A DNA stretch of 64,000 nt from Macrostomum lignano (GCA_002269645.1 NIVC01000808.1:186001-250000), one strand, 5' to 3'. Counted from the first letter of the stretch, positions 10,385 through 50,771 are shown. Numbers and translations: made by a program. Notes: generated by a model not told the origin, from the sequence alone.

Positions 10385-11385
10385 ATTCTCAGTTGCTGGG
10401 CCAGCCTCCCAGATCCTCAGTTGCTGGGCCAGCCTTCCATATCCTCAGTTGCTGGGCCAGCCTCCCAGATCCTCAGCTGCTGGACCAGCCTCCCAGATCC
10501 TCAGTTGCTGGGCCAGCCTCCCAGATCCTCAGTTGCTGGGCCAGCCTCCCAGATCCTCAGCTGCTGGGCCAGCCTCCCAGATCCAGATCCTCAGTTGCTG
10601 GACCAGCCTCCCAGATCCTCAGTTGCTGGGCCAGCCTCCCAGATCCTCAGTTGCTGGACCAGCCTCCCAGATCCTCAGTTGCTGGGCCAGCCTCCCAGAT
10701 CCTCAGTTGCTGGGCCAGCCTCCCAGATCCTCAGCTGCTGGGCCAGCCTCCCAGATCCAGATCCTCAGTTGCTGGACCAGCCTCCCAGATCCTCAGTTGC
10801 TGGGCCAGCCTCCCAGATCCTCAGCTGCTGGGCCAGCCTCCCAGATCCAGATCCTCAGTTGCTGGACCAGCCTCCCAGATCCTCAGTTGCTGGGCCAGCC
10901 TCCCAGATCCTTAGTTGCTGGACCAGCCTCCCAGATCCTCAGTTGCTGGGCCGACCTCCCAGATCCTAAGCTGCTGTGCCAGCCTCCAAGATCCTCAGTT
11001 GCTGGGCCAGCCTCCCAGATCCTCAGCTGCTGGGCCAGCCTCCCAGATCCTCAGTTGCTGGACCAGCCTCCCAGATCCTTAGTTGCTGGACAAGCCTCCC
11101 AGATCCTCAGCTGCTGGACCAGCCTCCCAGATCCTCAGTTGCTGGGCCAGCCTCCCAGATCCTCAGCTGCTGGGCCAGCCTCCCAGATCCAGATCCTCAG
11201 TTGCTGGGCCAGCCTCCCAGATCCTTAGTTGCCGGACCAGTCTCCCAGATCCTCAGCTGCTGGGCCAGCCTCCCAGATCCTCAGTTGCTGGGCCAGCCTC
11301 CCAGATCCAGATCCTCAGTTGCTGGACCAGCCTCCCAGATCCTCAGTTGCTGGACCAGCCTCCCAGATCCTCAGCTGCTAGACCA
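10385..11385 (+). repeat. About 1 kb array of the 28-nt minisatellite
   Basis: Same unit as the DCTN5 intron, with GGGCC/GGACC and CAGATCCAGATC variants. Confidence 0.95.
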
Positions 11386-12395: not shown

Positions 12396-13282
12396 CCACC
12401 CAAACTCACGTGACCAAAAGATCCTATCAGTTCCCTCGTGGCCATAAAAATACGCCAGGTGCAGTCATAAATCATTCAAAATCGTTACATTATGATTTAT
12501 GACCTTTCGCGTAGGAATTACAAAAATTAATGAAAAAATATGCGTTAGAAAGTGAAGATGGTGAAGAGAAATGGATAATCGCTAATCCCAAAGTCACTTT
12601 TAGGGGTAAAACGCATAGCTGTCAAAGCTGTCACACGCTTGAATGAACACGAACAATAGGCCCTGACCTCATAAATCTTGATGGCCTGTCAAAAATGATG
12701 AGAAAAAAGCTACCGCCCGCATCTTCTCAGACCATCTGGCGCCAGCCTCAACACTGAGTGAGGCGCAGGTGGCTGTCAGACCAGCTCACAAGCAATGATT
12801 TATGACCCCAAAAGTAGCGAACCGCGCCTATGTTATTACTCTTGGAAGTGACTGTTAATACAGTAGAGCAGCTGTAGGAATTAAAATTGATGCGGGGAAA
12901 GAGTTGCAAAGCACACGCCCCTGCGTGCAGGGATGGCTCTGCAGCTATGGTTCACTTAATGCAACAGCACTTTAAGTTTCTCTGAATTGAACTGAAAGGC
13001 TAAATGAGTGCTAGACGCTATTTCGCTTCCCAAGAAAAGCGTAAAATCTAAATCTAAATCTAAAGAGCGTAAAATCTAAATAACGAGAATACTTTAATAA
13101 GTTTTCAACAAGGATTTTGACTTTTTTCTCGATCGAATCTCGATTTAAAAAAGTGCCGAGAATCCGAGATATAAAATAAAGTTAAATAAAGAGCCCTAGG
13201 TTGAATACCAATCTTCTTAATATAGCCTAGACATCAAAATAAACACATTGAATTCAAAATAAATCAAATTAGCGCAAAAAAA

Positions 13283-15900
13283 TCAACTCATTTTATTGTC
13301 ACCCGTATTAAGGGATTTAGTTAAGTGTTTGGAAAATGATGCCGCATGCAGGCTAAAGAGCAACAGCCAACGAAAAGATTCAACTCCATCCACGTCACCG
13401 CGGGAGAATGCTGCTTTGACGACTACGCCGGCCATTAGGCTGCCCAAGCTGCCGCCACCAGCATTCAATGGAGATCGGACGCAATGGACTGCATTCTGGG
13501 ACCGCTTCAACTCCAGCAGCCACGACAACCCGAGCCTCAGCGTCATCGACAAGTTCAGCTACCTGCAATCGTGCCTTTCAGGAGAAGCCTTGAGACTGGA
13601 TCGTGTTCGTTGGTCGAGATTCCTCGTCTTCTTCAAGCATTCCGGTTTCATCCGGTCGCTCTTACAGCTGATATTGAGAAGGCGTTTCTTCAGATTCGCA
13701 TTGCTGAAGAAGATCGGGGTGCACTGCGGTATCTCTGGCCACAGGATCCAAGTCGAGCTGAATCGCCACTCGTTGTTCTTCGTTACGCCACTTTGGTGTT
13801 CGGACTCACCTGCTCACCTGCAATTCTTGAGACGGTCATTCAACATCATTTAGCATCTCATCGGGACCAGGATGCGCAGTTCGTGGACAAAGTATCGAAA
13901 GAGATCTATATGTAGACAATCTAATCTCTGAGTGTGCAAGCGAACGGCAAGCCATGGAACTCATCCAAAAATCTCGTCACCTCTTCCGTCAGGCAGGTAT
14001 GAATCTACGCCATTGGCAGTCCAACAGTAAAGCGGTTTTGTCCGCAGTTCGAGCTAGCACTACAGACCAGGACATTCTGGCTCCAGCCCTGTCAGTAGAG
14101 ACTCTCAGAATGACGGAAGACCACAGGAGCTATTCCTCCGCCTCATTGGGTGAGGAGGGCGTGTTGTCGAAGGTCCTTGGGTTGCACTAAGAAATCTGAT
14201 CGGACGTGTTCGTGCTTCGGTTCTCACCACCAGAGGAGTTACTCAGAGGTACGCAATCCAAGCGAGTCATGCTACAGCTTCTGGCTCGTGTCTATGATCC
14301 TCTCGGCTTCCTAGTTCCACTGCTGACTTGGCCGAAAACAATGTTTCGGACGCTCTGTGTTCGCAAAGTTGCTTGGGATTGCCCGCTGGATGAGCCGACT
14401 GAACAACTGTGGCAGAAGTGGCTGCAGGACATGCTGAAAGCACGATTCCAAGTACCGCGGCTAGTGCTTTTCGCGACACGGGTGGTCCAAGAGATGCAGC
14501 TTCATGGCTTCTGTGACGCATCCGCAAAGTGCTTGTCTCTACCTACGATTTCAGTACACCGACGGTTCCGTCAGCTGTACCCTGGTGGCGGCGAAGGCCA
14601 GAATGGCTCCACTATCGGCCCTGTCGATTCCTCGGCTGGAACTGGTGCACTGATACTGGCCAGACTAGTGATTTCAGCCGAGTGAGCGAGTGAGCGAGCG
14701 AGTGACGAGTGCGAGCATCCTCAAGTCTGCCAAGTTTTCTGCTGGACAGATAGTGCCGATAATCTCTACTGGATACGACAGCACAAGCCCTGGAAGCTCT
14801 TTGTTCACAACCGAGTCGAGTCTCTGAGATCCGCCGGCTGCTTCCGGAGGAATCATGGCGACACGTGCCAGGCAATGAGAACCCTGCCGATGTTGCATCT
14901 CGCGGCACTTCGGTCGACAAGCTGAAGACTGATACCAGCTGGTGGCATGGTCCTGATTGGCTGACTCGACCTCCAGAAGGCTGGCCTGACCAATCCTTTC
15001 TCAATCTAACCTCAGCAACGGAAGACGAGGAGCAGAAGGCATCAGCAGACAAATCAATCGTTCTACTCACTGATGTTGTTCCGGACTTGGGACTGCATTG
15101 AGTTATACCAGATTCGGATTTCTAAGCTCATTAGGGTGACAGCTTACGTCTTTCGATTTGTCAAGAACCTACAAGTTCGAACTTCCAGAAGCACGAGTAT
15201 AAACAGAAGCAGAGGAGCGTTGGCTGAAAGAGGTACAACGAAGGAGTTTCCCTGCTGAGATTGCTCACTTTGAAATGTCGACAGCATCTGCGGACCTCGC
15301 AAAGCAGCTGAATCTCTTCCTCGACAGCAAAGGTCTGCTCCGAAGTCGGGGTCGATTGAGAGAATCAAACGTTGGTTCAGCTGCTGATTGCCCCATCCTC
15401 ATCCCGAACAAGACGCATCTAGAAGTTCTCCTCATCCGAGACGTGGACAGCAAAGTTCTGCACGGGGGAGTTCCAAGCACCCTTTGCAAACTGCGTGAGA
15501 AGTTTTGGCTGATCCGTGGCAGGCAGCGAGTGAAGGCAATTCTTGGAAAATGCGTCGTCTGCAGGCGTCTTCAGGGACTCCCGTTCGCTGTAAAGCAAGT
15601 TCCTGCGTTGCCAGAATCTCCCGTGAAAGCAATGAGAGCTTTCGAGTGGAGCGGGCTCGACTACTGTGGTCCGGTCAAGCTGAGAGACGACACTGCTGTC
15701 GAGAAGGGCTACATCTTAGTGTTCCCCTGCGCAGCAACGCGAGCGTTTCATCTAGAACTGGTGAAAGATCTAACAACTGAGCCCTAAGGAGATTCTGTGC
15801 AAGGAGAGGTATTCCTAGTCTCATCAGCGATAACGCTAAGACATTCACCAAAGCCGTGCGGAAATTGCAAGCATCGGAGAGGTAAAAGGTATTACTAGCA
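13283..15900 (+). mobile_element. Decayed BEL/Pao LTR retrotransposon: gag remnant fused by internal deletion to RT, RNase H and integrase
   Basis: Gag LPKL..F.GD..QW.AFWD.F..DKFSYL; RT ALTADIEKAFLQI and YVDN; YDPLGFL; LHGFCDAS; NPADVASRG; WWHGPDWL; HGG...C..C; GLDYCGP. Multiple stops and frameshifts. Confidence 0.92.
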
Positions 15901-17086: not shown

Positions 17087-17728
17087 TCAATTCAAAAGTG
17101 GAACTGATATCCTTATTTTGGATGCCACAAAGTTGACTAATTTAGAAAGAATTGAAAAAATATTGTCACCGCTGTTCCGCCTCGCTTCCTCCAACAATTT
17201 TTGGATGTCGTTTTCGAGTTTTACCATCGCCCTGTGAGCCTCTTCATTCGACTGTCGCAAGTTTTTCACCTTTTCTCTGAGAGTTGCTACATCACTACGC
17301 AGCTGCGAATGGTCCACTTCCTTCCACTGTCGCAAGTTATTCACCTTTTCTCTGAGAGTTGCTACATCACTACGCAGCTGCGAATGGTCCACTTCCTTCG
17401 ACTGTCGCAAGTTATTCACCTTTTCTCTGAGAGTTGCTACATCACTACGCAGCTGCGAATGGTCCACTTCCTTCGACTGTCGCAAGTTATTCACTTTTTC
17501 TCTGAGAGTTGCTAAATCACTACGCAGCTGGTCCACTTCCTTCGACTGTCGCAAGTTATTCACCTCTTGTCTGAGAGTTGCTAAATCACTACGCAGCTGG
17601 TCCACTTCATTTGACTGTCGCAAGTTTTCCACCTCTTGTCTGAGAGTTGCTACATCACTACGCAGCTGCGAATAGTCCATAGCAACTATTCCCACTATGC
17701 CGCATAGTATGAAACCCAGATACTGCAT
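17087..17728 (-). CDS. Intronless secreted coiled-coil repeat protein, 213 aa, six 23-25 aa units
   Basis: Hydrophobic N-terminus, heptad repeats, RR site and amphipathic tail; paralog at 22461-22736. Confidence 0.8.
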   Translation of the reverse strand: MQYLGFILCGIVGIVAMDYSQLRSDVATLRQEVENLRQSNEVDQLRSDLATLRQEVNNLRQSKEVDQLRSDLATLREKVNNLRQSKEVDHSQLRSDVATLREKVNNLRQSKEVDHSQLRSDVATLREKVNNLRQWKEVDHSQLRSDVATLREKVKNLRQSNEEAHRAMVKLENDIQKLLEEARRNSGDNIFSILSKLVNFVASKIRISVPLLN

Positions 17729-18070: not shown

Positions 18071-19354
18071 TTGGCTGAACTAATCGTTAGTCACTACGAG
18101 CTACGACATCCACGACACATAGAGCTGTGCACGTAACATATAATGTTGTCATCTAGAAAAAAGTAACTTTTTATTTTGCAAGCCCATTCTCTTCTGCCAA
18201 TCTCCGGCTCCAGCCAGCCTTCTGTCAGTCTCTCTGTCGCTCTCTGTTCCACATCCTGCAATCAGCTTTTCCATTCATTCTTCTGACAGCCAAGGACCTT
18301 GCGGCGATAAAACTCTAAGAGTTAGATAAAAGTTTGTTAGAACTCTGTTTTCATTTCTGGCTAGGCGCAACTGAATTGCTATACTCGTAAGGATATTGTT
18401 TAGACATATACATACTCTATAGACATTTGTGCATATTTTTGCCATCTTGGTCTCAGATTGCTTGAAAGAAGCCTCACTTAGCTCGCAAAACCTACCTTCG
18501 CGCAAAGTGACGCTATTAGCTCGTATACTCTCGTAGTTATATTATAACTCAATATTATCAAAGAAATTCACTTACTCGGGTTACGCCTTGCTTACTCGCA
18601 GTTTTTGTACTTGTAAATTGTAATTATACTGTACTTTAGTCACGGATGATGCTTTTGTAATATAATCTAGCACTGTAGCTTTGGCAACCGTTAACAGCAG
18701 TATGCAGCAGTTCTAAACGAAAAACGAAAATCCTAGGCCAATCACCCTTTATGCACGAAACGGGATTTATTTTTAGCCTGTGCTCTGCGGTCACTTGATT
18801 GGTACACGGGCCTGCTCAACCAAACTGCTCACAGAGAAAAGCTATAGCCTATTATACATGCGCATTACAGGCACGTACTAGCGGGGTAGAGAAGACGCAT
18901 CCCCCCAGTAGACAGGCAAAAATGATGACGCGCCCCTGATTCTGTTTCCCAATTTGGAAGTTCCCCAATTTTCGCTTTCGACTGCCATCGCAACAGAGGT
19001 ACATGCATGCAGTGGCGTAGCTAGGATTTTGAAATGGGGGGATAACTGGAAGGGAAAAACTTGCAATCAAATAAAATAGTTTTTTGTGATTTTTGCTTTA
19101 CATTTGCATTTAAAAAGTACCAGCAGTATTAATATTAATAGGCTAAAAAACCTTTTAATTTGTTAAAATCAGAATAAAAGACATCAGACATCGGGATCGA
19201 GATTCGCGGGATTCGCAGAAACATCGTTTAAAACATTTTAATAATAATTTACTAGTGAAAAACATTTTTATTGCATTTTTTGGTATATTTTTCTAAATCT
19301 GAAGCCGCTTTATTTTGATTTTTTTCAAAAAACCTCACTTTCCTTTCCTATTGC

Positions 19355-19950
19355 TATCTGGGTGGATGCTTGCTATCTTGGTGGATGCTTGCTATCTGGT
19401 GCATGCTTCTACAATATTTGGGGGGGGGTGCTTGCTATCTGCAGATGCTTGCTATCTAGGAGGATGCTTCAACAATATCTGGGGGATGCTTGCTATCTGC
19501 AGATGCTTGCTATCTAGGTGGATGCTTCAACAATATCTGGGGGATGCTTGCTATCTGCAGATGCTTGCTATCTGGGTGGATGCTTGCTATCTGGGTGGAT
19601 GCTTGCTATCTGGGTGGATGCTTGCTATCTGGGTGGATGCTTGCTATCTGCAGATGCTTGCTATCTGGGTGGATGCTTGCTATCTGGGTGGATGCTTGCT
19701 ATCTGGGTGGATGCTTGCTATCTGGGTGGATGCTTGCTATCTGGGTGGATGCTTGCTATCTGGGTGGATGCTTGCTATCTAGGTGGATGCTTCAACAATA
19801 TCTGTGGGATGCTTGCTATCTGCAGATGCTTGCTATCTGCAGATGCTTGCTATCTGGGTGGATGCTTGCTACGAGTATTAGGGGATGCTTGCTATCTGCG
19901 GTTGCTTACTTTTGGAGGGGGATGCTTGCTATCTGAAGGGATGCTTGCTG
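19355..19950 (+). repeat. 19/17-nt minisatellite GATGCTTGCTATCTGGGTG inside the hAT-like element
   Basis: Direct read. Confidence 0.93.
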
Positions 19951-20159
19951 TCTTAGGAATATTTTCTATTTAGGGGAATGTCTGTTATCTTTGTGAAAGC
20001 TATATTTAGTTGTCTGTTTGTTAATCTTAGAAAAAAGAGATTCATAGCAAATATCATTGTCCGTGACAATTTTACATGAATAAGGTGATTTATAAAAGTG
20101 AATAAGGAATTAGTGTTTAAGAAAAAGTGCTTTTTTAATTGTTTTCCATGAACTATTTT

Positions 20160-22460: not shown

Positions 22461-22736
22461 TCAGCTCAAAAGTGGAACCCATTTTTTGATTTTCGACGCC
22501 ACAGCATTGACTACTTTAAAAAGAAAGGGAAAGCCGTTCCAGCCGTTTCGCCTCGCTTCCTTCAACTCCAACAATTTGTTGTTTTGAAGTTTTATCATCG
22601 CCCTGTAAGCCTGTTCATTTGACTGTCGCAAGTTTTTCACCTCTTCTCTGAGAGTTTCTATATCACTGCGCATGTGCAGATAGTCCATAGCAACCATTCC
22701 CACTATGACGCACAGTATGTAGCCCAGATATTGCAT
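22461..22736 (-). CDS. Short paralog (91 aa, one repeat unit) of the secreted coiled-coil protein
   Basis: MQYLGYILCVIVGMVAMDY...LRQSNEQAYRAMIKL..EARRNGWNGFPFLFKVVNAVASKIKKWVPLLS. Confidence 0.78.
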   Translation of the reverse strand: MQYLGYILCVIVGMVAMDYLHMRSDIETLREEVKNLRQSNEQAYRAMIKLQNNKLLELKEARRNGWNGFPFLFKVVNAVASKIKKWVPLLS

Positions 22737-22913
22737 TGCTCACTATTTAGAGTCTGAAATGGTAGAGAAAAAGTGAAAGTGGTTTAAGCTAGAGATTACG
22801 CACTCGATTTTATTCATATTGCTGAGTATTGCAGTTGCAGTTGAGAAGAAAGTGAGTTATAAACTGCTCCAGTAAATTGCATTGATATGCACTTGGCTGG
22901 ACAGCCACGAGAT

Positions 22914-25134
22914 GGGTCACCGTCTTTTCACTGCCACAATTTAACTCCTGGCCTTTTGACTGCCGGCGACTTTTGACTGCCGGCGACTTTTGACTGCCGG
23001 CGACTTTTGACTGCCAGACTTTTGACTGCCAGACTTTTGACTGCCAGACTTTTGACTGCCAGACTTTTGACTGCCGGACTTTTGACTGCCAGACTTTTGA
23101 CTGCCGGACTTTTGACTGCCAGCGACTTTTGACTGCCAGACTTTTGACTGCCAGACTTTTGACTGCCAGACTTTTGACTGCCAGCGACTTTTGACTGCCA
23201 GACTTTTGACTGCCAGACTTTTGACTGCCAGACTTTTGACTGCCAGACTTTTGACTGCCAGACTTTTGACTGCCAGACTTTTGACTGCCAGACTTTTGAC
23301 TGCCGGACTTTTGACTGCCGGACTTTTGACTGCCGGCGACTTTTGACTGCCAGACTTTTGACTGCCGGTATTTTAACTGCTAGACTTTTGAATGCCGGTA
23401 TTTTAACTGCCAGACTTTTGACTGCCGGACTTTTGACTGCCAGACTTTTGACTGCCAAACTTTTGACTGCCGGTATTTTAACTGCCAGACTTTTGAATGC
23501 CGGTATTTTAACTGCCAGACTTTTAACTGCCAGACTTTTGACTGCCTGACTTTTGACAGCCAGACTTTTGACTGCCAGACTTTCGACTGTCTAGTCATCT
23601 TTTCATTTTACATTTGGGCTGGGAGGAGAATCTACAGAACGGAGCCAGAGGGCAGTTAGTTTACTTGGGTGAAGCAGGAGATTCTTGAATAGGTGGAAGG
23701 AGATCTTTTTACGAGGGAGGCACAGAAACAGCATGTAGTGATAGCGAGTGAATATAGTGAATTAGTAAATATGAGGCGTCAGCCCATGAAATGGCTTCAG
23801 AAGATATTTCAATCCCTGAATAATTCTGAGTATGAATTTAGTAGGTTTAATTTCCCCAATCCAAAGGTTTTTGGAGCATCTCAACAATAATAAACAAGTC
23901 TTATTTCTAAGACTTTTGTTATTGTTAACTTATAATTACTAATTGACAGATACGACTAATGATGACTGAGTTAGCGAATTCGTATTCATTTATCGCATGC
24001 TAATTGATTAAAAGTACTAACTAATCATAAATAAGAACAAGTATAATGTGGTATTTCCGGCTGTCAAAAGTCTGGCAGCCAAAAGTCGCCGGCAGTCAAA
24101 AGTCCGACAGTCAAAAGTCTGGCAGTCAAAAGTCGCTGGCAGTCAAAAGTCTGGCAGTCAAAAGTCTGGCAGTCAAAAGTCGCCAGCAGTCAAAAGTCCG
24201 GCAGTCAAAAGTCGCCGGCAGTCAAAAGTCCGACAGTCAAAAGTCTGGCAGTCAAAAGTCGCTGGCAGTCAAAAGTCTGGCAGTCAAAAGTCGCCGGCAG
24301 TCAAAAGTCCGGCAATCAAAAGTCTGGCAGTCAAAAGTCCGGCTGTCAAAAGTCAGGCAGTCAAAAGTCGCCGGCAGTCAAAAGTCCGACAGTCAAAAGT
24401 CTGGCAGTCAAAAGTCGCTGGCAGTCAAAAGTCTGGCAGTCAAAAGTCTGGCAGTCAAAAGTCGCCGGCAGTCAAAAGTCCGACAGTCAAAAGTCTGGCA
24501 GTCAAAAGTCGCCGGCAGTCAAAAGTCCGGCAGTCAAAAGTCTGGCAGTCAAAATCGCTGGCAGTCAAAAGCCTGGCAGTCAAAAGTCCGGCAGTCAAAA
24601 TCGCTGGCAGTCAAAAGTCCGGCAGTCAAAAGTCTGGCAGTCAAAAGTCTGACAGTCAAAATCGCTGGCAGTCAAAAGTCCAGAAGTCAAATTGTGGCAG
24701 TCAAAAGTCGCCAGCAGTCAAAAGTCCGGCAGTCAAAAGTCGCCAGCAGTCAAAAGTCCGGCAGTCAAAAGTCTGGCAGTCAAAAGTCGCCGGCAGTCAA
24801 AAGTCCGGCAGTCAAAAGTCTGGCAGTCAAAATCGCTGGCAGTCAAAAGTCCGGCAGTCAAAAGTACGGCAGTCAAAATCGCTGGCAGTCAAAAGTCTGG
24901 CAGTCAAAAGTCTGACAGTCAAAAGTCTGACAGTCAAAATCGCTGGCAGTCAAAAGTCCAGAAGTCAAATTGTGGCAGTCAAAAGTCGCCAGCAGTCAAA
25001 AGTCCAGAAGTCATTGTGGCAGTCAAAATCGCCGGCAGTCAAAAGTCGCCGGCAGTCAAAATCGCCGGCAGTCAAAAGTCGCCGGCAGTCAAAAGTCCAG
25101 AAGTCAAATTGTGGCAGTCAAAAGTCGGTGACCC
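22914..25134. mobile_element. Foldback-type element: inverted arms of 15/17-nt GACTGCCAGACTTTT repeats around an AT-rich spacer
   Basis: Left terminus GGGTCACCGTCTTTTCACTGCCACAATTT matches the reverse complement of the right terminus; arrays at about 22930-23590 and 24050-25130; no TSD found. Confidence 0.8.
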
Positions 25135-27126
25135 GTGAAAACTCGTTGTCTTTTGTCAAAATCTATGGCTCCACAAGGCGACGCTTGATTTCGCTCTTTA
25201 ACGCACTGTGCGCCACTACTACACGGGATTTAGAAATGGCAAGTAATAGTGCCAAGATGAGCCAGCCAGCCGCCACGAGGTAACTGCATTCATGTTGCCA
25301 AGTCTCGCTGTATCTGCGTTTTTATTTATTCTTAATCTAGTTACAGTACATGTACAGCGATTTTGTGTAGGATATCAAATGTTTCAGACCCAATCGCAGT
25401 AATGTCACTCCTTTTATGATTTTCGACATGACTTAAAAACAAAAAGTTTCCATTTTCCTCTATCGATGACTTAATTAAAGAGTGAGACAACTAATCCTCC
25501 ACCGCTTGAAACAGACACTCCGTTTTCATTGCTGGCTAGGCGCAACTGAATTGCTATGAGGATATAATTGTTTGACTCGATGTCTGAGTTTGAGCAACTG
25601 CTCACTTTATTCATACGGTCTAATATTATCAAAGAAGTTTACTTACCCTTGTTTACTCGCAGTGTTTGTACTTGTAAATTGTAATTGTACTTTTTCATGG
25701 ATGATGCTTCGGAACAGTCTAGCACTGCAGCTTTGGCATTTGGCAACCGTTAACAGCAGTTATGCAGCAGTTATAAACGAAAAACGAAAAACGAAAATCT
25801 AACCTTTTTGAAGTGCAAATCAGCCTTTATGCACGAAACGGAATTTATTTTTAGCCTGTGCTCTGCGGTCACTTGATTGCTACACGGGCCTGCTCAACCA
25901 AACTGCTCATTCAGAAAAGCTATTATACATGCGCATTGCAGGCACGAAGGTAGGGGGGGGGGGGTTGAGACGCTCCCCCAAGTAGACAGGCAAAAATTAT
26001 TTTCCCCAATTCTCGCTTTTAACTGCCATAGCTACGAGTGTACATGCGTGTGTGATCAAACAAAGCAGAGCTGAAACTGTGTACTAAAGTGCAGAAGAAT
26101 TTACGACTACGAGTAAGCGGAACTGCTCACAAAAGGTTTAAAAAATTGAAGTAACTTTCTCTATTCGCTATTGTCTGTTAGTACTTACTTACCTGACGCA
26201 TGACTTTACTTTTATGGGCTGCGTCTTTTGTTCTTGTTATTCCGTTTAAAGTACATGTATGTTTTCTCGGCTTTTAAATTCGAACTACACTTTTCTAGGT
26301 CTAAGGCCCAGTAGGAAGTCCAGACTTTGACGAGGGAATAATAGGGAATACAATTCCCCCTAAGCAAATTCCCCGGGGATGGATTCCCTAGAGTAATGTT
26401 AGAGAAAGTTCTCGGACACGCCTGCGAAGCATGAAGAGCAGTGCTCAGTGGGGCAGACTTCGTGTAATGGATGCAAGTTCTTGGCGATGGACAAAACCAC
26501 CTGTCAGAATTCCGATTACGGAAGTAGGAAGTCAATCCTGTGTTCCCGGGATTAACCTTCGGTATAACCCTCTTTAGAACTCCAGTTTTGTTAAAATAAA
26601 GACAAGCACACAGGGTGGCAAAAGTTTGTATCAGACCTCGCAAGTAAATAATTATAAAACTATTATTCTATTGATGCAAGTTGAAAATTCGGCCGCACTT
26701 TAATAAAAACTGTTTATTAAATAACTTTTATCAGTTTCATAATTAATTCAGGTAAGAAGAAAATGATACACGTTTCAAATTAGCAATTTGAAAAGCATTT
26801 TATATGCGGGAAATGAAATATAGCGTATTGAAACAATTTTTTAAACAGTAAATTTTATTCTTATCTTATCTATAAGCGAGGTTATACTGGTAATTTAAGA
26901 TAAGAGGAAAATTTATTTCATCAAGCAATTAGCGTCATATTATAAGCTGAATATTAATTATTGGCCAGGTTTGGCATTGATTATGCCAATACAAAACAGA
27001 ACCACGGTGTGTTTATTCGCTCGTTTTTTTAATTACTAAATTTATATACGCAATTCGTGTGAACTTTAAATAAACAAATAAACATATATATTGACACAGT
27101 CTAGCGCGCAATAGTAAAATAATATG

Positions 27127-30100
27127 CCCGGTTGAAAAAAATACTGGATTAGCCCATTGAAATTGGCCCGCTCATCGGCCACTTCGTGTCAGAAAAGCCC
27201 GCTCTAAAAGCCCGCTCATTTTTCCAAATCAACGAGTCTCAAATCGGCCCGTTCCACGGCCCGCTTCTGGGCCCGCTGGCTGGCCCGCTGGTTGGCCCGT
27301 TCTAAACCGGCCCGCTGGCTGGCCCGTTGTTTGGCCCGGTGGCTGGCCCGTTGGTTGGCCCGCTCACTGGCCCACTCATTGACCCGTTCTAAACCGGCCT
27401 ACTGGCTGGCCCGCTGATTGGCCCCCTCATTGGCCCGTTCTAAACCGGCCCGCTGGTTGGCCCGTTGGTTGGCCCGCTGATTGGCCCGTTCTTAACCGGC
27501 CCGCTGGTTGGCCCGTTGGTTGGCCCGCTCATTGGCCCACTCATTGACCCGTTGTAAACCGGCCTGCTGGCTGGCCCGCTCATTGGCCCGTTCTAAACCG
27601 GCCTACTGGCTGGCCCGCTGATTGGCCCCCTCATTGGCCCGTTCTAAACCGGCCCGCTGGTTGGCCCGTTGGTTGGCCCGCTGATTGGCCCGTTCTTAAC
27701 CGGCCCGCTGGTTGGCCCGTTGGTTGGCCCGCTCATTGGCCCACTCATTGACCCGTTGTAAACCGGCCTGCTGGCTGGCCCGCTCATTGGCCCGTTCTAA
27801 ACCAGCCCGCTCATTGGCCCGTTCTAAACCGGCCCGCTCATTGGCCCGTTCTAAACCGGCCCGCTGGCTGGCCAGTTGGTTGGCCCGCTGGTTGGCCCGT
27901 TCTAAACCGGCCCGCTGGTTGGCCCGTTGGTTGGCCCGCTGGCTGGCCCGCTCACTGGCCCGTTCTAAACCGGCCCGCTGGCTGGCCCGTTGTTTGGCCC
28001 GGTGGCTGGCCCGTTGGTTGGCCCGCTCACTGGCCCACTCATTGACCCGTTCTAAACCGGCCTGCTGGCTGGCCCGCTCATTGGCCCGTTCTAAACCAGC
28101 CCGCTGGCTGGCCCGTTGGTTGGCCCGCTGGTTGGCCCGTTCTAAACCGGCCCGCTGGTTGGCCCGTTGGTTGGCCCGCTGGTTGGCCCGCTCACTGGCC
28201 CACTCATTGACCCGTTGTAAACCGGCCTGCTGGCTGGCCCGCTCATTGGCCCGTTCTAAACCGGCCCGCTGGTTGGCCCGCTGAACGAACAAAAAAAATA
28301 AGTAAAGAAGCAAAATAAGCATGAGATTTCTAAGTCAGACCGATGAGCCGTACAATTAGCTTTTTTATAAAAACCGGGAATATACTTCATCGGATCTGGT
28401 AAAAACAAAGAGATGTTAAGGTTAAAATTGAATACTAGTATTTTTTCATGGTGGCACGAATAGCTAAAAGAGCTAATATAGCTAATAGAGCTATCTGAGC
28501 TAAAAGAGCTAATATATAAAAGAGCAACCCTAGCCTCAGAGTCTATTCTCAACCCAAAGTAATGTTTGTCAGCATAGTGAAAAATTGTCACCACAATCGA
28601 GGCCTAGTCTCTACTACTCGCTTTCCTCTTCATTTTCTGCGCAGGCGCCACTTTTCGCAGACGAACTCTCCCGATCCCGTACGGTCCTGACTGTAGGGCG
28701 GAAGACCTCGCCGAGTTCGGCGTCTGTGAATAGTTTTTTGTCCTCCTCTGAGACCAGTTTACTGGCCAGGTAGGACCGTATGGCCGCCTTCTTGGAGCTA
28801 TCCAGCTCAACCCGGTTGGCCGCTTTCTCTCCTTTCACCTGTCGACCAGCCCAAGATGCGGTTCGCAGGTCTTGCTCAGGGCACACAGCAAGTATGACTA
28901 GCCGAATGGCTCGTCTGCGAATCTTGTTATTGTTTGCGGCTTTTCGCATTTCAACTGCTGCGGCTTCCAATTTTGTCAGGGCCAACGGACAAACCGTGAC
29001 ACCGGGAAATGCAGCTATCAGCGGCACACGTTTCGACGACTGGTTGCCCATCATGGAGGTCGATATATTTGCGATTGCCGTCGCAATGGCGTGGCTCACA
29101 AATCCACTGGTAAGCTGCGATGACGTCGAGCCACTTGGCTCGGCATCGATGCCGATATCGGCAGCAGCTGATGACGACTCTCCGGGTGCAGTACTCGAAC
29201 CAGCGACCAACGTTTCGTAGTCACTAATAGAGCGCACCAGACTTTCGAGGTGGCTGCATGATTCTGTAGTTCTACGTGCCACCTCGTTGGCCGACCGCGC
29301 CTGCGCCGTGACGAACCGTAGCGTCTCAAGTATCTGAGAATTCGCATGCATGGAACTTGCAAGACGGGTGTCATACTTTTGCAGCACGTCATCTTTCTGT
29401 GCCAGTTCCTGTTTCAGCTGCTCATTCTCAGACCGAATGGCCTCATTCTCAATCTTCAGGTTGGCTGCATCAGTTTCAGCAGCCCCCCGCTTGTCCGTCT
29501 CTTCTCGATTTGCCTCACGTAGGTCACGACATTCGATGTCGAGGTTCCGGCAGCGCGGGCATCCGGCATCAGGGTGATTTATAACGGGTTGCACGCGCCT
29601 ATAGGCGCCTGCAGAGCCCCACCCCATTAAAGTTGCCGATTTGGCCAGGTTGTCCCGGGCAGCGTAGGTGGACTTCCTATCCGGAAAAGGCCCGGCTGTC
29701 AGGAAAGCGTCGAAAGTTTTTGCACTCGGGCTATGGCCAGTCCGTACTTGTACTTTAACGCCGACTGTTCGTGTTACGGGGTCCGGGTCGACGATGCACT
29801 TTTGGTCGATGGCCATAACTTTGCCGGTGTTAGTGTACGTGAGCACCCACCAAATAGCTTTGTGGATGACCATGACACGGGGCGCCTTAGCCTTTGGTGG
29901 TCCACCGGCCCTATTGCGATGCCGCATCTCCTTTCTCGACTCTAGATCTGGCTCGCTCGATGAGTCAGATAGAGATTCGCGATGCCGATGCCTATCGGCA
30001 TTGGCTTCGGCTTTCCGTTTTGTAGTAGAGCCGGTCGGCTCCGCGGACACGGCCGTGCTCATATCGGAGCCGATTAGCGCCGTTGAAGTGGCGTCGTGGG

Positions 30101-31878
30101 CTTTAGGGAGCGTCCTCACAATCGTCGCACTGCTCGATGGCGTCCAACGCCATTGGAGCGCCACTCCAATAGTCGTCATCTGGAGCTTCTTCGCCTGGTT
30201 CCTCAACGATAGATCTAGAAGATACGTCCTCATCGTCGTTGTCTGAATACTGCGAGCCGGTAGGCTCGACGACCATGGGAGTCTGGACGCCACTGCTACA
30301 TCCACCTGTTGCCAATGCTGGCTGCCAGCTGCTGCCAACACTGGCTACACTGTTGCTTGTTTGCGCGTCATGAGTGGTTGGTACGTCATGAGTGGTCCGA
30401 GTTGCAGTTAGTAAATGGCTCACTGAAGCTTCTGCTCGTGTCGGACGGGCTGTCGCCGCAACTGTCTGTCTGAGTGATTCTTTGAGTCGACTGAAGCGCC
30501 GTGCGATGGCAACTGACTTCTTGTCGAGCTCTTTTAGTCGTTCAAGTGACTGAAAATGAAGAAATTGAATACCTGTGTGACTAGGAGAGAATCCGTACTA
30601 AAATTGTTAATTAACAAATACCATCATTCTACTATCAGTTTGAATCAGTTTGCTATCTTAGCCCAAGAGCCAACAAAGGGCGAAGCAATGGTTTCACACT
30701 AAACTGGGTGATATCTGAAGTACATACGTCACAACGTAGCGCGATATACAAATTGCTGTGGGCGTATGAGGCGATAAAAATAAATAAAATTGACACACTC
30801 ATTGTACATGTCATCATGAAATTTGTGTATGCACAGTTTATTGGACAGCATTAGTGCTCTACAAATCAAATAATTGCCCGAGCGCCAAGACACCGCAAAA
30901 GTTTACACGTACAAGTTTATACACCATTTGATAAGATTATCACGTTCACAACAAGTCAGCGGGCCGGTTTAGAACGGGTCAGTGAGCGGGCCAACCAGCG
31001 GGCCGTGCAGCGGGCCGGTTTAGAACGGACCATTGAGCGGGCCAACCAGCGGGCCGGTTTAGAACGGGCCAACCAGCGGGCCAACCAGCGGGCCAACCAG
31101 CGGGCCGGTTTAGAACGGGCCAACCAGCGGGCCAACCAGCGGGCCAACTAGTGGGCCGAGCAGCGGGCCGGTTTAGATCGGGCCAGTGAGCGGGCCAACC
31201 AGCGGGCCGTGCAGCGGGCCGGTTTAGAACGGACCATTGAGCGGGCCAACCAGCGGGCCAACCAGCGGGCCGGTTTAGAACGGGCCAGTGAGCGGGCCAA
31301 CTAGTGGGCCGAGCAGCTGGCCGGTTTAGAACGGACCATTGAGCGGGCCAACCAGCGGGCCAACCAGCGGGCCGGTTTAGAACGGGCCAACCAGCGGGCC
31401 AGTGAGCGGGCCAACTAGTGGGCCGAGCAGCTGGCCGGTTTAGAACGGACCATTGAGCGGGCCAACCAGCGGGCCAACCAGCGGGCCGGTTTAGAACGGG
31501 CCAACCAGCGGGCCAGTGAGCGGGCCAACTAGTGGGCCGAGCAGCTGGCCGGTTTAGAACGGGCCATTGAGCGGGCCAACCAACGGGCCAACCAGCGGGC
31601 CGGTTTAGAACGGGCCAACCAGCGGGCCAACCAGTGGGCCGCGCAGCGGGCCGGTTTAGAACGGGCCAGTGAGCGGGCCAACCAGCGGGCTAATCAGCGG
31701 GCCGATCTGCGGATCGGTTTCGAGCGGGCCATTAGCGGGCTAATCAGCGGGCTTCAGAGCAGGCCGGGTTTCAGCGGGCCAATTTGTTGTAAAAGGCCTG
31801 TAATACGGGCCGATTCGCTTCGGCCCGCTAATGGCCCGCTCAAAAGCCCACTGAGGCCCGCTAAGTTTTTCAACCGGG
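27127..31878 (-). mobile_element. CACTA/CMC-like non-autonomous DNA transposon, 4752 bp
   Basis: Perfect 13-bp TIR CCCGGTTGAAAAA, 3-bp TSD ATG on both sides, and opposed subterminal GGCCCG arrays (27165-28282 and 30957-31860). Confidence 0.8.
28614..30627 (-). CDS. Coiled-coil plus putative C-terminal BEN-domain protein inside the element; exons 30627-30622 and 30549-28614, with a +1 break at 30105
   Basis: ATGATG|GTATTT, 72-nt intron, TTTTCAG acceptor. C-terminal AIRLVILAVCPEQDLRTASWAG...LDSSKKAAIRSY fits the BEN pattern by eye. Confidence 0.65.
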
Positions 31879-32929
31879 ATGTAGCTAATTATAATAATTT
31901 AATTTAATATCAAGAACGGAGAAATCTGATCTGACCAAACCAGACAATGTCCGTGCCTTTGGGATGCCCAGCTGTTTTGCTGCAGTGACTTTGGTGAATT
32001 TTGAAACTATGTATGTATTGAAAATACAGAACACATTACAGAACAGACAAGTTCATGAATTCCATAAAATGAGTAGCGCAATGCAAGCTCCGGCATCGTA
32101 GGCTCAAAAGCTAAGGACCTTAATTTATGCTTACAACAATACCGTCGCATTTACTAAATTCCTGCACTGACTACTTTTAGTAGAGACTGATTCCTGCCGA
32201 CAATGCTGGTTTTTAAACAGTAATAATAGTAATAATAATTAAGATTTTGGATTCACAGGTAGCGTAGAGTTAAATTGTTAGTGGCAAATTGGGAGAAAAG
32301 GAAGGCTGTGAACTGTCTCTTGTCTCGAGACAGGAGGGAGAGAGAAGACAGCAGGAGGACATCAAAGATAAAATTTCACACCTAGAACTAAAATGTAGCA
32401 CAAAAACTCGCTTACTACTACTACTACTGGCCAGATTAGAGTATAAGTAAGTAGTTCGGCACATAGACGCCCTCGCAGATTATAAAAAATGGAGTTAATT
32501 CATATTAAAGCAACTATTGATGGCAAAACAGCAAGTTTACAACAGCAACAACCCGAGAGCCTGGATTATATCGAATATAAAAACGCATACGAGTTTAAAA
32601 GAGAAATTGCTAAGCGCGAAAATATATTTTAAAAAAATAAACACGGTGGCAAAAGGAAGCGGAAGGCAGCTTTAGGAGTAGCACAATTCATATCTATTGA
32701 TAAGTCTATCCTATTAGCAAACAAAAAGGACCAGCGCGCTAAAAGCAAATATATTGCGGCACAGAGCGAGGAGGGGGCGTGAAAACGCCGCAAAAATTGA
32801 GTTTTGAGTCGAACACAACAGGATAACTACATAATCGGATACAATCCATCTCGATTCGCGCGGTATCCCAACGTTTTTTAAGGGCCACGGAACGTGATAA
32901 TGGGGAAATTCGGAATTCTATAATATTCG

Positions 32930-33475
32930 GGGTCCTGTGGGATGCGGAATTCTATGGGATTTGGGATTCTGCAGGATTTGGGATTCTATGGGATTTGGGA
33001 TCCTGTGGGATTCGGGATTCAATGGGATTTGGGATCCTTTAGGATTTGGGATTCTATGGGATTTGGGATCCTGTGGGATTCGAGATTCAATGGGATTTGG
33101 GATCCTTTAGGATTTGGAATTCTATGGGATTTGGGATTCTGTAGGATTCGGGATTCTATGGGATTTGGGATTCGATGGGATTTGGGATTCTATGTGATTT
33201 GGGATCCTTTGGGATACGGGATTCATTAGGATTTGGGATAATGCAGGATTCGAGATTCAATGGGATTTGGGATCCTGTGGGATTCGCGACTCGATGGGAT
33301 TTGGGATCCTGTAGGACTGGGGATTCTATGTGATTTGGGATCCTGTGGGATTCGGGATTCATTGGGATTTGGGATCCTGCAGGATTTGGGATTCTGCAGA
33401 GTTTGGTATTCTATGGGATTTGGGATTCTATTGAATTATGGATATCGCAGGATTCCAGATGCAACAGGATACTTA
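32930..33475 (+). repeat. GGGATT-core minisatellite downstream of the MARK stop
   Basis: Direct read. Confidence 0.9.
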
Positions 33476-34094
33476 AGGATTGTGTTAAAAATTGGGATCT
33501 TATAAAATTTCAAATCACTGGATCACACGCAGCTCCAGATAGAGTCCAAAATTCAAACGACGACAAGGAAAGGCAAGCTGAATTTTATGAAACTGTTCGC
33601 AACCGAAAGCAAGCGACTGTTTTCTGTTGTACAATACGCGTCCGCAATGTACAGTAAGGGGCGCAGTGAAGGCACAGCCATATATGGAGAGAGCAAGTCT
33701 ACTGCTACACATACTGTACGCTATTAAATATACTTGTGCAATAATATATCAATAGATCAACAGAAACTAAAGACGCAAGTTAAATAATATTTATGAATAC
33801 AGTAAGTATTCGTATTTATATAGGCGAAGTAAGCACAAGCGAGATGAGTAGTATAGTATGAAGTAGTAGTAGTAGCACTAGACCAGTGACGATGAATTGA
33901 AACGAAAAAATGATTTGCTCGAACACAGAAGTAAGTCAGAACAGAGCTGCTATGACACCCAGCAGCAATTACAGATGGACTTCGAAATTGACAAAATTAT
34001 TTACAGAGAAACTGTACTCATATTTATCTACTCGATCAGGTAGCTTACGGCTTTGCGAAGGTGCACAGGCTTAGGATCGGGATTCAGGAAGTAG

Positions 34095-34420
34095 ACATCG
34101 GGATCTCGGGGATTAAGCATGGGGATTTTGGGACAAAACACAGGGATCTCGGGGATTAAGCGTGGGGATTTTGGGACTTAACATCGGGATCTCGGAAATT
34201 AAACACGGGGATTTTGGGACTAAACATCGGGATCTCGGAAATTAAGCGTAAGGATTCTGGGACTTAACATCGGGATCTCGGGGATTAAGCATGGGGATTT
34301 TGGGACTTAACATCGGGATCTCGGGAATTAAGCGTGGGGATTTTGGGACTCAACATCGCGATCTCTGGGATTAAGCGTGGGGATTTTGGGACTAAACATC
34401 GGCATCTCGAAATCGGGATA
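34095..34420 (+). repeat. 43-nt minisatellite CATCGGGATCTCGGGGATTAAGCGTGGGGATTTTGGGACTTAA
   Basis: About 7-8 direct units. Confidence 0.92.
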
Positions 34421-34510: not shown

Positions 34511-44560
<10,050 letters not shown>

Positions 44561-45379
44561 TGCTGGGTGGTGTTTGACTTGGATGGCATTTAAGTCAGGT
44601 TAGTTCATGGATGAGGTGAAAAGCTGCAGTGAACTGTGTCTTTATGAATAACTAATTCATAAGGTGATCAAAATGTGAACTAGTTTAACTCACTGTAGGG
44701 AAGCCTTCCTGTACAGTCGTCAACATTTTTGTACCAGATGACATTGCAATAGAATTTGCTTTAGAATAGAATGTCCACCCAATTTTTTAATGGTGGACTG
44801 GTGGGCTACCCAGGAAGCAACATCTGCAAATGTTAAATAAACATTTTGTACTTGAATATCAGTTGAATAATATCAACCAGTTTGCCTATGCTTAAGATCT
44901 ATATTTTATAGCTAAGCCTCATTGTCATTCTTTCAAGCTCATAGTGTATAGCTAAAGGGTATAGAAATATTGTTATATATTCCTACTATATTCTGAAAAT
45001 GACTATTCATTAAAAACTGTTAACTTCCAGTTTTAGCTTTTTAAACTATTTTTACTAGTTAAATAACCACAAATAAAGAATATTGCATTCAAAACCTTTG
45101 AAAAAAAGTGACAAAACATATTAGAAACCTAAAAATGCTATAGCTAGTTGCAAACAGCAAGGGTTTTCTGATATATTTTAATTTTTTTTATATTTTTACC
45201 TAGCCATGCATCTAGCTAAGAAAAACAAAGTGCTGATTTGGCATGTAGGGTCCAAATTTAGGATAGATGTATTAAAATAAAAGTTGATATGCTAAACCTA
45301 TAAAAATAGTAAATAAAAATATAAAAAACTAGAGCATATATAATTCTAACAATATTTAATTTATAGTATCTATAGCCAT

Positions 45380-46035
45380 TAGACTAGCATCAATAGGTCA
45401 AGGGTGCAACTTAGACTAGCATCAATAGGTCAAGGTCAAGCTTAGGCTAGCATCAATAGGTCAAGGGTCAATCTTAGACTAGCATCAACAGGTCAAGGGT
45501 CAATCTTAGACTAGCAGCAACATCAATAGGTCAAGGGTCAATCTTAGACTAGCATCAACAGGTCAAGGGTCAATCTTAGACTAGCATCAATAGGTCAAGG
45601 GTCAATCTTAGACTAGCATCAATAGGTCAAGGGTCAAGCTTAGACTAGCATCAAGATCAACAGGTCAAGGGTCAATCTTAGACTAGCATCAATAGGTCAA
45701 GGGTCAATCTTAGACTAGCATCAACATCAATAGGTCAAGGGTCAATCTTAGACTAGCATCAATAGGTCAAGGATCAAGCTTAGACTAGCATCAATAGGTC
45801 AAGGGTGCAACTAAGACTAGCATCAATAGGTCAAAGATGCAGCTTAGACTAGTATCAATATGTCAAAGGTGCAACTAAGACTAGTATCAATAGGTCAAAG
45901 ATGCAGCTTAGACTAGTATCAATAGGTCAAAGGTGCAACTAAGACTAGTATCAATAGGTCAAAGATGCAGCTTAGACTAGTATCAATAGGTCAAAGGTGC
46001 AACTAAGACTAGTATCAATAGGTCAAGGGTCTAGC
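45380..46035 (+). repeat. 32-nt minisatellite TTAGACTAGCATCAATAGGTCAAGGGTCAATC
   Basis: Direct read; unit variants change along the array. Confidence 0.93.
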
Positions 46036-46613
46036 TTAGGCTTAGACTTAATAAGTTTAGACTATCCACTCCTGCCTATATTATAATTTATTAAAAAACA
46101 TTTATTAGATTTACATTAATCAAAAGTTCAAACTCTTGGCTATAAGCATACTTCAACTGATTGTATTTTTATGTAACTTATGCCAGAGACCAATTAAATG
46201 CTTAATTAGATTAATATAAAAATGTTTTTTAAAATTATTTAAAATAATTTTAGGGCTTATATAAAATCAATTTGATTTTTATATATTTTTAAAGAATTAG
46301 AAGAATACAATGCTAAAATCTTTTTAAAAAGTATATAACAATAACAAGTTCATAATAAAATTATAATGGGTCACCCCATAGAGGGATAAAAGGGTAATTA
46401 TCCTTTAAGGGCTAGGATAGTTACCTGGGTACAATCAGCCCTTTCTGCTTCTAGCCTATATTTGCAGGGGCCCTCTTGATTCTTTTACAAAATTGATAAT
46501 TGTATAACTCATTTTGAATGCATGCCAAATCTAGGAAAACACATTTGTTATAATACACATATTTTTCATAATATTTTATGTGAACTAATTTTTGATTAAA
46601 CTAGCAGTAAATG

Positions 46614-47435
46614 TAGTGTTGGGCAAGTTACTCAAAAAAAGTAACTTGCGTTACTGTAAGTTAAGTTACCAATTTTTAAAAAGTAACTTACATTAGCCTA
46701 GTAACTTTAGACAAAAACCTTGTAACTTTTAAGTTACTGTCTGTTACTCACTTCCGTTACCCATGTTATTAACAAAATTTTCTGCTTTTTTCACATTGTT
46801 GTTATCAAAATTTGCCATTGGGCATTGGGATTAACCAATTAACAGACAGAGACAGGAATTGGCGACACAATGTGAGGCAAGTAGAAGGACCAATGGGCAA
46901 TGACAATCAATAATTAAAATTATAAATGATAAAATAAACAAATATCAATAATTCAATAGAGTAAAATAAATAGAACTGTATAAAATGGTCTAGTGTACTG
47001 CAGTGCCAGTGGAGGGACTTGTGGAGGCTACAGATGAATTTCTGTCTTTGGTTGTTTGTTTGAATCAAACTTGAAAATTTTTAGTAATGAAAATGAAAGG
47101 CGAAAATATTTTACCAAAATTAACAAAGTAAGACATATTTCAAGTATTTCTTCATTAATTAAGCGCAATACCATATGATACTATTCACTTAATTTTGAAT
47201 TTAGGAATGAAAAATGCAAAAACATATGACAACTGGAGTACTAGCTAAGCATTTCAGTTTTAAATTTAAATATTGCAATTGTTGCAAAGTAACTATAATG
47301 GACTTCCGAAATTTGAGTAACTTACCGTTATTCCATTACTAAAATAAAAAAGTAACTTGCGTAAAGAACGCTTTACAAAAAAGTAACTTGCGTTACCATT
47401 TGCAAGTTACTCGGTAACGGAAGTGCCCAACACTG
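46614..47435. mobile_element. hAT-type MITE, 822 bp
   Basis: TIR (T/C)AGTGTTGGGCA, exact 8-bp TSD AGTAAATG (46606-46613 and 47436-47443), subterminal AAGTAACTT repeats. Confidence 0.9.
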
Positions 47436-48469
47436 AGTAAATGTTAGTATAAATAGAAGCATTTTTGGCGGAGGAGAGACCAACCTCGCACATTGCAGTT
47501 CCTTAAGAAAGAAAGCTAGTATCAAATAATAAGAGTTCCAAGTAAATATTATTGAAGATTGTTTTCTGAGTTATTTATTTGCAGAAGTGAAGTGGTAGAG
47601 AATACATACAGTAAAATTGATGAAAATTTGCATCAATTTTGAGTGATTGTGCCACAACTTTTTCCTATCTTGGCAGTGCATTTTCTCTCTAGTGGGGGAT
47701 GGGGGCATTCTAAGTGGCTACGTATATACACTTGGACCCTTGCTATCTGGCAGACAATGAAATTCAATGCATAAACTTGCGAGCCTCTCACTGTAGCAGA
47801 CACTAAATGTACACTAAAAAATCAATGCTTTAAACTGGGAAATTTCAAACAAAAACTGCTACTTGAGTTTTGAACTTTGAGAGAAGAGACTTATATTGCT
47901 AGAAAGTTCTTTCAATGTTGATATAAGTTGTTTGCTTTAAGTATGAAAACTAAAAGCACAGCATTCAGAAAACAATTTCCATACTTTTAACTTTCTGCAA
48001 AGATTGTACTCATTTTTGCGAGACGCAATACATAAATTTGGGGGCTTCAACTTCTAACTGCCATTGTGTATTGGAGGGTTGATTTAGATTGCATAATCAT
48101 TTTGTTAACTTTAACTAAGACTGATACTGACTGACTGAAAAATCGATTTCACAATTAATTGGTTCAATTGGTTAATTTTTTTTATTATTGGCACCTTTCA
48201 AAGAGGCAGCACTATGCAGCTCTAACCCTAATCCTAACTAATGAATCCTTTTCTTTGCAGATATTTAAGCCAAACAATAATGGAATTCCAGTGATAGGAT
48301 TTCTTCCCCTTTCTTGTCTAACAGAAGAGTTGGCCTCATATTTTTATAAAAGTAGACCTAAATAAGACCTAGGCCTAATTAATATATAGCATAGGCCTTA
48401 ATGTTTTTTAATAATAAATTAAGACAAAATAAGCTAGGCCTAGCATAGCCTTGTATAGCTTATTATGGT

Positions 48470-50752: not shown

Positions 50753-50771
50753 AACAAAGAGGGCCTATAAA

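Follow-up and report, generated by a model that had tools for sequence, protein, structure and literature searches.

What role can a single gene play in a DNA transposon that lacks any recognizable transposase, when that gene lies between two arrays of short, mutually inverted repeats? This question is raised by a 4,752-bp element at positions 27127-31878 of a stretch of the Macrostomum lignano genome (NIVC01000808.1:186001-250000; the whole 64-kb stretch analyzed is called the window hereafter). The element is a genuine, recently inserted cut-and-paste transposon (class II, with terminal inverted repeats, TIRs). The explanation that best covers all of the evidence, whose chance of being right we put slightly above even, is that it is a recently inserted non-autonomous CACTA-like element with a protein that binds its arrays in the manner of TnpA of En/Spm.

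Both ends of the element carry CCCGGTTGAAAAA, a TIR that starts with CCC and is perfect over its 13 bp (13/13), located at 27127-27139 on the + strand and at 31866-31878 on the - strand, and these are the only perfect matches to this sequence in the 64 kb. The trinucleotide ATG adjoins the element on the outside at both ends (27124-27126 and 31879-31881). An earlier note on this DNA had proposed these 13-bp TIRs together with an ATG target site duplication (TSD) and had made its reading hinge on them; both have now been confirmed by a perfect empty site. The paralogous contig NIVC01000158.1 (locus L005), which was reached through PAA89220.1, a paralogue of the 91-aa gene at 22464-22736 (-), is collinear with the window on both sides and lacks exactly 27127-31878. 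In the alignment, positions 11164-13219 of L005 (reverse complement) correspond to window positions 25067-27126 (95.7%) and positions 13217-15799 to window positions 31879-34409 (92.2%), the two alignments overlapping on L005 by exactly 3 bp, namely ATG. The empty site reads ...AATAATATGTAGCTAAT... with a single ATG, and across the wider junction ...GCGCAATAGTAAAATAATATGTAGCTAATTATAATAATTT..., again with one ATG and with 60 bp per side identical to the window flanks. The single ATG in the collinear paralogue proves that the element is a true insertion with a 3-bp ATG duplication, whose ends lie exactly at 27127, where the sequence absent from the empty site begins, and at 31878. Furthermore, perfect TIRs, an intact TSD, and a paralogue free of the element indicate that the insertion postdates the duplication of the region. 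The insertion site is AT-rich and intergenic; a MARK/par-1-type kinase gene has its stop codon 2.6 kb away. Another TIR-like pair in the window, at 54414 and 58501, was rejected as being within chance expectation.

Inside the TIRs, the element is dominated by two strictly polar arrays, approximately 1.0 kb on the left and 0.8 kb on the right, which are inverted relative to each other. On the left (27127-28300), we counted 66 GCCCG cores between 27166 and 28276, all on the + strand and none reversed, and on the right (30901-31878), 51 CGGGC cores and 3 reversed cores in the outermost 60 bp; the remaining 59 kb of the window contains 60 cores in total. The spacing between cores is 12 nt in 40 cases on the left and 30 on the right, and 15 nt in 13 and 8 cases, respectively. 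The GGCCCG core is invariant in the array units, of which GGCCCGCTGGTT, GGCCCGTTGGTT, and GGCCCGCTCATT are the commonest at 12 nt and GGCCCGTTCTAAACC is the commonest at 15 nt. These units are arranged in a higher-order unit of 51 nt (12+12+12+15), with additional 114- and 165-nt units in the right array, and an 18-mer of the array had 70 matches versus 0 expected. Tandem Repeats Finder (TRF), the unit catalogue, and the 18-mer enrichment placed the left array at 27241-28283 (+), composed of GGCCCGCTGGTT with its variants and of GGCCCGTTCTAAACC, whereas the same 12- and 15-nt units occur in inverted orientation in the right array at 30957-31752 (-). Thus, the opposed arrays of about 1 kb with GGCCCG every 12-15 nt that had been noticed earlier were borne out by TRF, core counts, and spacing alike.

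Between the arrays and the TIRs lie a left subterminal region (27140-27240, +), with scattered degenerate (G/A)GCCCGCT motifs that are all in the + orientation, and a right subterminal region (31753-31865), with flipped motif cores at 31823, 31834, and 31856. The left and right arms are complementary over up to 249 nt (83-90%), and the ends are asymmetric beyond the 13-bp TIR, in that the three outermost motif copies on the right are flipped. No ungapped match between the TIR and an array unit was found at ≤3 mismatches. The ratio of observed to expected CpG was 0.95 inside the element and 0.81 outside; in other words, CpG is not depleted and there is no sign of methylation-driven CpG loss, so that the role for CpG methylation at the repeats contemplated in the earlier note is probably moot.

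To which group of transposons does such an element belong? With its 3-bp duplication, the element cannot belong to the Foldback/MULE (9 bp), P/Galileo (7-8 bp), or hAT (8 bp) groups, even though its arms look like those of a foldback element; the duplication fits the CACTA-type and PIF/Harbinger groups. TIRs of the animal CACTA superfamily begin with CCC, as in SmTRC1 of Schistosoma mansoni and in elements of Aedes and Tribolium (PMC1636069, DeMarco et al.); SmTRC1 has a Transposase_21 protein, 54-bp TIRs, and 2-bp duplications (PMC1636069). The TIR examined here starts with CCC, as in these animal elements, and not with CACTA, a likeness of three bases that constitutes weak evidence. Its 3-bp ATG duplication agrees with the 2-3 bp of CACTA/CMC elements, and no internal open reading frame (ORF) contains the Transposase_21 (Tnp2) domain of this group, which a non-autonomous member need not have. 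Therefore, the label "CACTA-like" used earlier is reasonable as far as the CCC start shared with the animal CACTA superfamily (PMC1636069) and the 3-bp TSD are concerned, but does not extend to the terminal sequence, which is not CACTA. Judging from its ends, the element can reasonably be classified as a putative non-autonomous CACTA-like transposon, closest among the described groups to the animal branch of CACTA/CMC.

The alternative that the element is instead of the Foldback type (MULE/FB or P/Galileo-like) or the PIF/Harbinger type must be weighed against the same data. Its arms consist of long inverted stretches of tandem subrepeats, which are described as the hallmark of Foldback and Galileo elements, and PIF/Harbinger elements are generally known to make 3-bp duplications and to need a second DNA-binding protein. 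However, the duplication, ATG, is 3 bp rather than 7-9 bp long and does not match TWA; the internal ORFs showed neither a transposase of the MULE, P/THAP, or Harbinger kind nor a Myb/SANT domain; and the CCC at the start of the TIR is shared with animal CACTA-type elements. We consider this alternative very unlikely and retain the CACTA-like classification in what follows.

The internal 2.7 kb of the element contains one long ORF of 575 codons (28614-30341, -), consistent with the single internal gene of the earlier note, but the structure of the gene proved less simple than that note implied. A second frame on the same strand lies upstream and is open from exactly 30549, immediately after the sequence ...ttcattttcag, down to a TAA stop at 30105-30103. 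This frame (30103-30549, -) encodes an N-terminal part of 150 codons, SLERLKELDKK...CEDAP, that begins at the splice acceptor. Upstream of it, ATGATG at 30627-30622, a possible mini first coding exon, is followed by GT, and removal of the resulting 72-nt intron (30550-30621, -; GT...TTTCAG) leaves the ATGs in frame with SLERLKELDKK.... In M. lignano, the trans-splice acceptor motif is [T/C]TNCAG and the 35-nt spliced leader (SL) ends in ATG (PMC8629364). TTTCAG fits this motif and puts an ATG in frame by cis-splicing or by SL trans-splicing alike; if the transcript is SL trans-spliced, the 72-nt segment would be the end of an outron. A putative promoter and 5' untranslated region (UTR) is predicted at 30628-30956 (-), with a TATA-like TATAT at 30748-30744 and an Inr-like TCAGAT at 30718-30713. 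On the other side of the gene, the region after the stop codon (28284-28613, -) is a probable 3' UTR, in which no canonical AATAAA was found by direct reading of the sequence and which includes a small tandem repeat of AGCTAAAAG at 28460-28525 with 9- and 18-nt periods.

The codon-usage log-likelihood, trained on the downstream ORF, favored the upstream frame over 30549-30106 and the main frame below 30105; in other words, the frame of the main ORF appears to be the one used from approximately 30105 downward. When one C is deleted from the CCC run at 30106-30108 (-), the two frames fuse into a continuous protein of 646 aa. We also considered an intron as the cause of the frame change; however, none of the 299 phase-compatible GT-AG candidates had a credible acceptor. 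Because no convincing intron was found, a 1-nt indel at this CCC run is the preferred explanation, and it may be either a genuine frameshift of 1 nt or a homopolymer miscalled in the assembly. If the break is not such an assembly error, the copy in the window could at most yield a separate N-terminal product of 150 aa and a C-terminal product of up to 482 aa from an internal ATG.

The deduced protein starts with an acidic, low-complexity N-terminus, followed by a basic stretch resembling a nuclear localization signal (NLS; KRKAE..., RNRAGGPPKAKAPR) and a basic, beta-rich module ending in CPRC (window positions 29550-29879, pI 9.7). Next comes a helix of approximately 115 residues (29205-29549), for which the pLDDT of AlphaFold2 (AF2) reached 95 and which is a predicted coiled coil; weak coiled-coil matches were also obtained with Pfam. 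A Ser/Ala-rich linker then leads to a basic helical C-terminal domain of approximately 110 residues (28674-29033, pI 9.9) and an acidic tail. AF2 predicts disorder or coiled coil for most of the protein. No internal ORF on either strand matched a transposase family in Pfam (including Transposase_21, MULE, P/THAP, and Harbinger), in agreement with the earlier statement that a DDE transposase is missing, and no Myb/SANT domain was detected in the internal ORFs with Pfam. Because this is the only gene in a recently moved element, it is conceivable that the element is autonomous, its single protein being a transposase or recombinase of a novel type. However, Pfam and PDB searches recognized no catalytic domain or motif in the protein, most of it is predicted to be disordered or coiled coil, and the gene is broken in frame in the window copy. 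We regard this explanation as the least likely of all those considered and as highly improbable, and we continue with a non-catalytic, putatively DNA-binding protein.

The C-terminal domain had been called a BEN domain, a call that the searches did not sustain. Pfam BEN (PF10523) gave no match even at E≤10, and no BEN chain was retrieved with phmmer against the PDB. A BEN profile built from 27 sequences (relatives of Insensitive, Bsg25A, BEND6, and NACC1) scored 2.2 bits against the ORF (E=3.4, not significant), ranking it second of the 341 ORFs in the window. The hhalign score of 13.2 fell inside the range of shuffled controls (median 10.8, maximum 22.8; 200 shuffles and 300 decoy fragments were used). 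Nonetheless, the sole alignment produced by HMM and hhalign places RRRAIRLVILAVCPEQDLRTASWAGRQ...VELDSSKKAAIRSY in the expected register of the BEN core, and the single-sequence AF2 model of the domain (pLDDT 51.5) has the order helix, helix, long loop, helix, helix, which is compatible with BEN. The one hint from structure came from Foldseek, in which the top match to this low-confidence model among 350,542 PDB chains was 8yzs_A, the NACC1 BEN-DNA complex (E=0.63, probability 0.30, TM 0.29). A Foldseek search of the BFVD viral library with the domain model gave nothing informative, and a search with a 438-aa model was discarded as meaningless. A BEN-like fold of the C-terminal domain is not established, and we give it roughly an even chance.

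Searches for relatives were likewise negative. No homologues of the whole ORF or of the C-terminal domain were found in a word-indexed search at E≤10, in a full HMMER scan of 1.84 billion representatives, or, for the element protein, with phmmer against the PDB, and Pfam returned nothing significant for any fragment or for the frame-repaired N-terminal 352 aa. Exact look-ups of the products from five alternative start codons, and of ten protein variants, seven of them frame-repaired, showed that none is present in the protein collections. At the DNA level, protein-pattern scans of viral and metagenome contigs revealed no further copies, an array 30-mer detected no copies of the element in metagenome, viral, or prokaryotic genome contigs, and there was no second copy in the 64-kb window or in the fetched paralogous loci. 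The only 30-mer matches, L001 3596-3700 (a TSGP-type coding repeat) and L002 4897-4926 (a bacterial gene), are coincidental short coding repeats and unrelated. A profile search seeded with BEN returned only proteins of <185 aa, and full-length Insensitive, BEND6, and NACC1 were not returned. Long eukaryotic proteins may therefore be under-represented, which weakens the finding of no homologue for a protein of 575-646 aa. Literature searches yielded no description of a BEN-carrying transposon or of the element at 27127-31878.

These results bear directly on the possibility that the gene is a passenger, captured or orphan in the Pack-TIR style and without a role in transposition, and that the arrays are expanded subterminal minisatellites. 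The element protein resembles no known transposon protein, minisatellites occur throughout the window, and the genome expands and contracts arrays readily, as seen in a neighboring element whose arrays differ several-fold between the paralogous contigs. On the other hand, no host homologue of the gene was found, although annotated M. lignano proteins were included in the searched collections; the element contains the complete gene together with an upstream region and a splice acceptor of its own; and dimeric DNA binders are typically built from a coiled coil and basic domains. We consider a passenger gene unlikely, though less so than the other alternatives.

How, then, might an array-binding protein contribute to the element? 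Long arms with multiple binding sites for the element's own THAP domain are reported for Galileo (PMC3688188). By analogy with these sites, with En/Spm TnpA, and with the Harbinger Myb-like protein, we infer an array-binding function. A transposase from an autonomous relative elsewhere in the genome would cut at the TIRs and mobilize the element in trans, and the protein of approximately 646 aa would act like En/Spm TnpA or the Harbinger Myb-like protein. Its coiled coil of approximately 115 residues would dimerize or oligomerize it, and the array units would be bound through one or both of the basic modules, i.e., the C-terminal helical domain (possibly BEN-like) and the beta-rich module with CPRC. 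The bound protein might then coat and pair both arms, regulate the promoter of the element, or do both. Binding approximately 120 phased, polar sites and thereby bridging or regulating the ends would be the most economical role to assume for a coiled-coil protein that has basic folded modules. The anti-silencing role envisaged in the earlier note is, like the binding itself, purely hypothetical.

The same binding could, however, serve the opposite end, if the protein acts against transposition as a repressor or competitor, in the manner of P-element KP and the type II repressors, or regulates the host response. Its architecture, in which a DNA-binding module is combined with a coiled coil while a catalytic domain is missing, is that of known truncated DNA-binding repressors, and elements that keep only a binding factor are known for both En/Spm and P, which counts in favor of repression. 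Sequence cannot tell such a repressor from a TnpA-like helper, and we hold the repressor to be quite unlikely, less so than an autonomous or a Foldback- or Harbinger-type element.

Several observations weigh against a CACTA-like element with a TnpA-like protein. The first bases of the TIR are not CACTA, the duplications of SmTRC1 measure 2 bp rather than 3 bp, and superfamilies with 3-bp duplications other than CACTA would be compatible as well. There is no transposase partner or second copy among the sequences searched, which leaves the family defined by a single copy. Homology to BEN lacks statistical support, and both structure models are poor (pLDDT 51.5). Finally, the genome is rich in minisatellites, and the arrays may reflect this general property rather than selected binding sites. 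A bolder extension of the TnpA-like explanation is that the element represents a so far undescribed family of flatworm transposons, whose own fast-evolving, BEN-like DNA binder with a coiled coil would recognize >100 phased sites in the kilobase inverted arrays, a new solution to the role played by TnpA or Myb-like proteins and possibly a source of host BEN-type chromatin proteins; in this full form, it seems to us rather improbable.

A clean, recently mobile DNA transposon with exact boundaries in M. lignano, which serves as a regeneration model and for which transgenesis has been reported, should aid annotation and possibly tool building. If the protein does bind its own arrays, non-catalytic sequence-specific binders beyond the TnpA and Myb-like proteins can serve transposon ends, and if the domain is truly BEN, a domain of chromatin factors would be linked to a mobile element. 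The paralogous locus also provides a natural before-and-after pair for the effect of a 4.75-kb palindrome-like insertion beside a kinase gene.

The surroundings of the element contain the genes for DCTN5, a SAPS-domain protein, a kinase with a KA1 domain, and an ARID4-like protein. All of these are animal genes. Splicing of the DCTN5 exons 2189-2497 and 3338-3598 gives 187 aa identical to M. lignano PAA75464.1, PAA76607.1, and PAA89218.1. This exact match overturned an initial impression of an insect host in favor of a free-living flatworm, and the window agrees at 100% with contig NIVC01000808.1 of assembly GCA_002269645.1. The 8 kb between the kinase and ARID4-like genes (46000-54000) has a G+C content of ~30%, versus an average of 45-55% elsewhere in the window. 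A second foldback-like element lies at 22913-25135, 2 kb to the left of the element at 27127-31878, with the termini GGGTCACCG and CGGTGACCC, inverted arrays of 15-17-nt GGCAGTCAAAAGTC units (22953-23589 and 24059-25126), a unique center of 470 bp, and no clear target duplication. This second element is also present in L005 (reverse complement, 10455-11235), where the flanks are collinear, the arrays are several-fold shorter, and the center is inverted (a minus-strand match, 93% over 480 bp), a pattern resembling an inversion caused by recombination between the two opposed arrays.

Minisatellite arrays, 0.1-1.1 kb long and with units of 15-75 nt, crowd the entire window, as do (CTGT)n-type runs. 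Examples in its first part and center are found at 2551-3237, 4124-4259, 10382-11379, 17242-17679, 19351-19953, 32908-33431, 34076-34409, and 35074-35529, and further along at 36389-37213, 41434-42106, 43892-44557, 45379-46039, 55224-55774, 56906-57448, and 61906-62355. One 28-nt unit occurs in the DCTN5 intron, in inverted orientation at 4124-4259, and again at 10382-11379, and many of the window's long ORFs arise from reading through such arrays. A degraded BEL/Pao-type LTR retrotransposon at 13484-15787 (+) has fragments matching reverse transcriptase, Pao peptidase A17, and the integrase zinc-binding domain. Two paralogous small genes, 17087-17728 (-) and 22461-22736 (-), start with MQYLG(F/Y)ILC.IVG.VAMDY, followed by a coiled coil; the former has six 75-nt (25-aa) repeats and the latter is the annotated 91-aa protein.

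How does the element compare with known systems? In protein architecture, its nearest counterparts would be the BEN-solo proteins (Insensitive, Elba1/Bsg25A, and BEND5/6) and NACC1, which likewise have a coiled coil followed by a C-terminal helical domain of approximately 100 residues. Locally, IRRRAIRLVILAV...TASWAGR...VELDSSKKAAIRSYL of the element resembles their TRKLL..IFD...LA.HS.TGK...LD..K...I, and the NACC1 BEN domain is the best structural match of the element protein's domain; however, there is no significant sequence or profile match, and the structural match, from a low-confidence model, is below significance. With Foldback-like elements (Drosophila FB, Galileo, and Tetris), the element shares kilobase inverted arms of tandem subrepeats around a unique center, whereas FB, Galileo, and Tetris make duplications of 7-9 bp and belong to the MULE or P superfamilies, and the element has a 3-bp duplication and no such transposase. 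PIF/Harbinger elements make a 3-bp TWA duplication and encode a transposase and a separate Myb-like DNA-binding protein that recognizes subterminal sites. The element resembles them in the length of its duplication, but its target is ATG rather than TWA, and it has neither a Myb/SANT domain nor a Harbinger transposase. Like SmTRC1, it resides in a flatworm and has CCC-starting TIRs, short duplications (2-3 bp), and tandem repeats or repeated motifs in its interior or ends (PMC1636069). It differs from SmTRC1 in lacking a transposase, in its 13-bp TIRs and 3-bp duplication, and in the far greater size of its arrays. Maize En/Spm makes a 3-bp duplication and carries motifs of approximately 12 bp, opposed inside its two asymmetric ends (approximately 14, dispersed), to which TnpA binds, and deletion derivatives of En/Spm that encode only TnpA are known. 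The ends of the M. lignano element are not CACTA, its motifs number approximately 120 in tandem rather than approximately 14 dispersed, and its protein, whose binding to the motifs is hypothetical, has no similarity to TnpA. Nevertheless, the element shares with En/Spm the 3-bp duplication, the opposed motifs of approximately 12 bp, the asymmetric ends, and a non-catalytic protein of its own that could bind these motifs.

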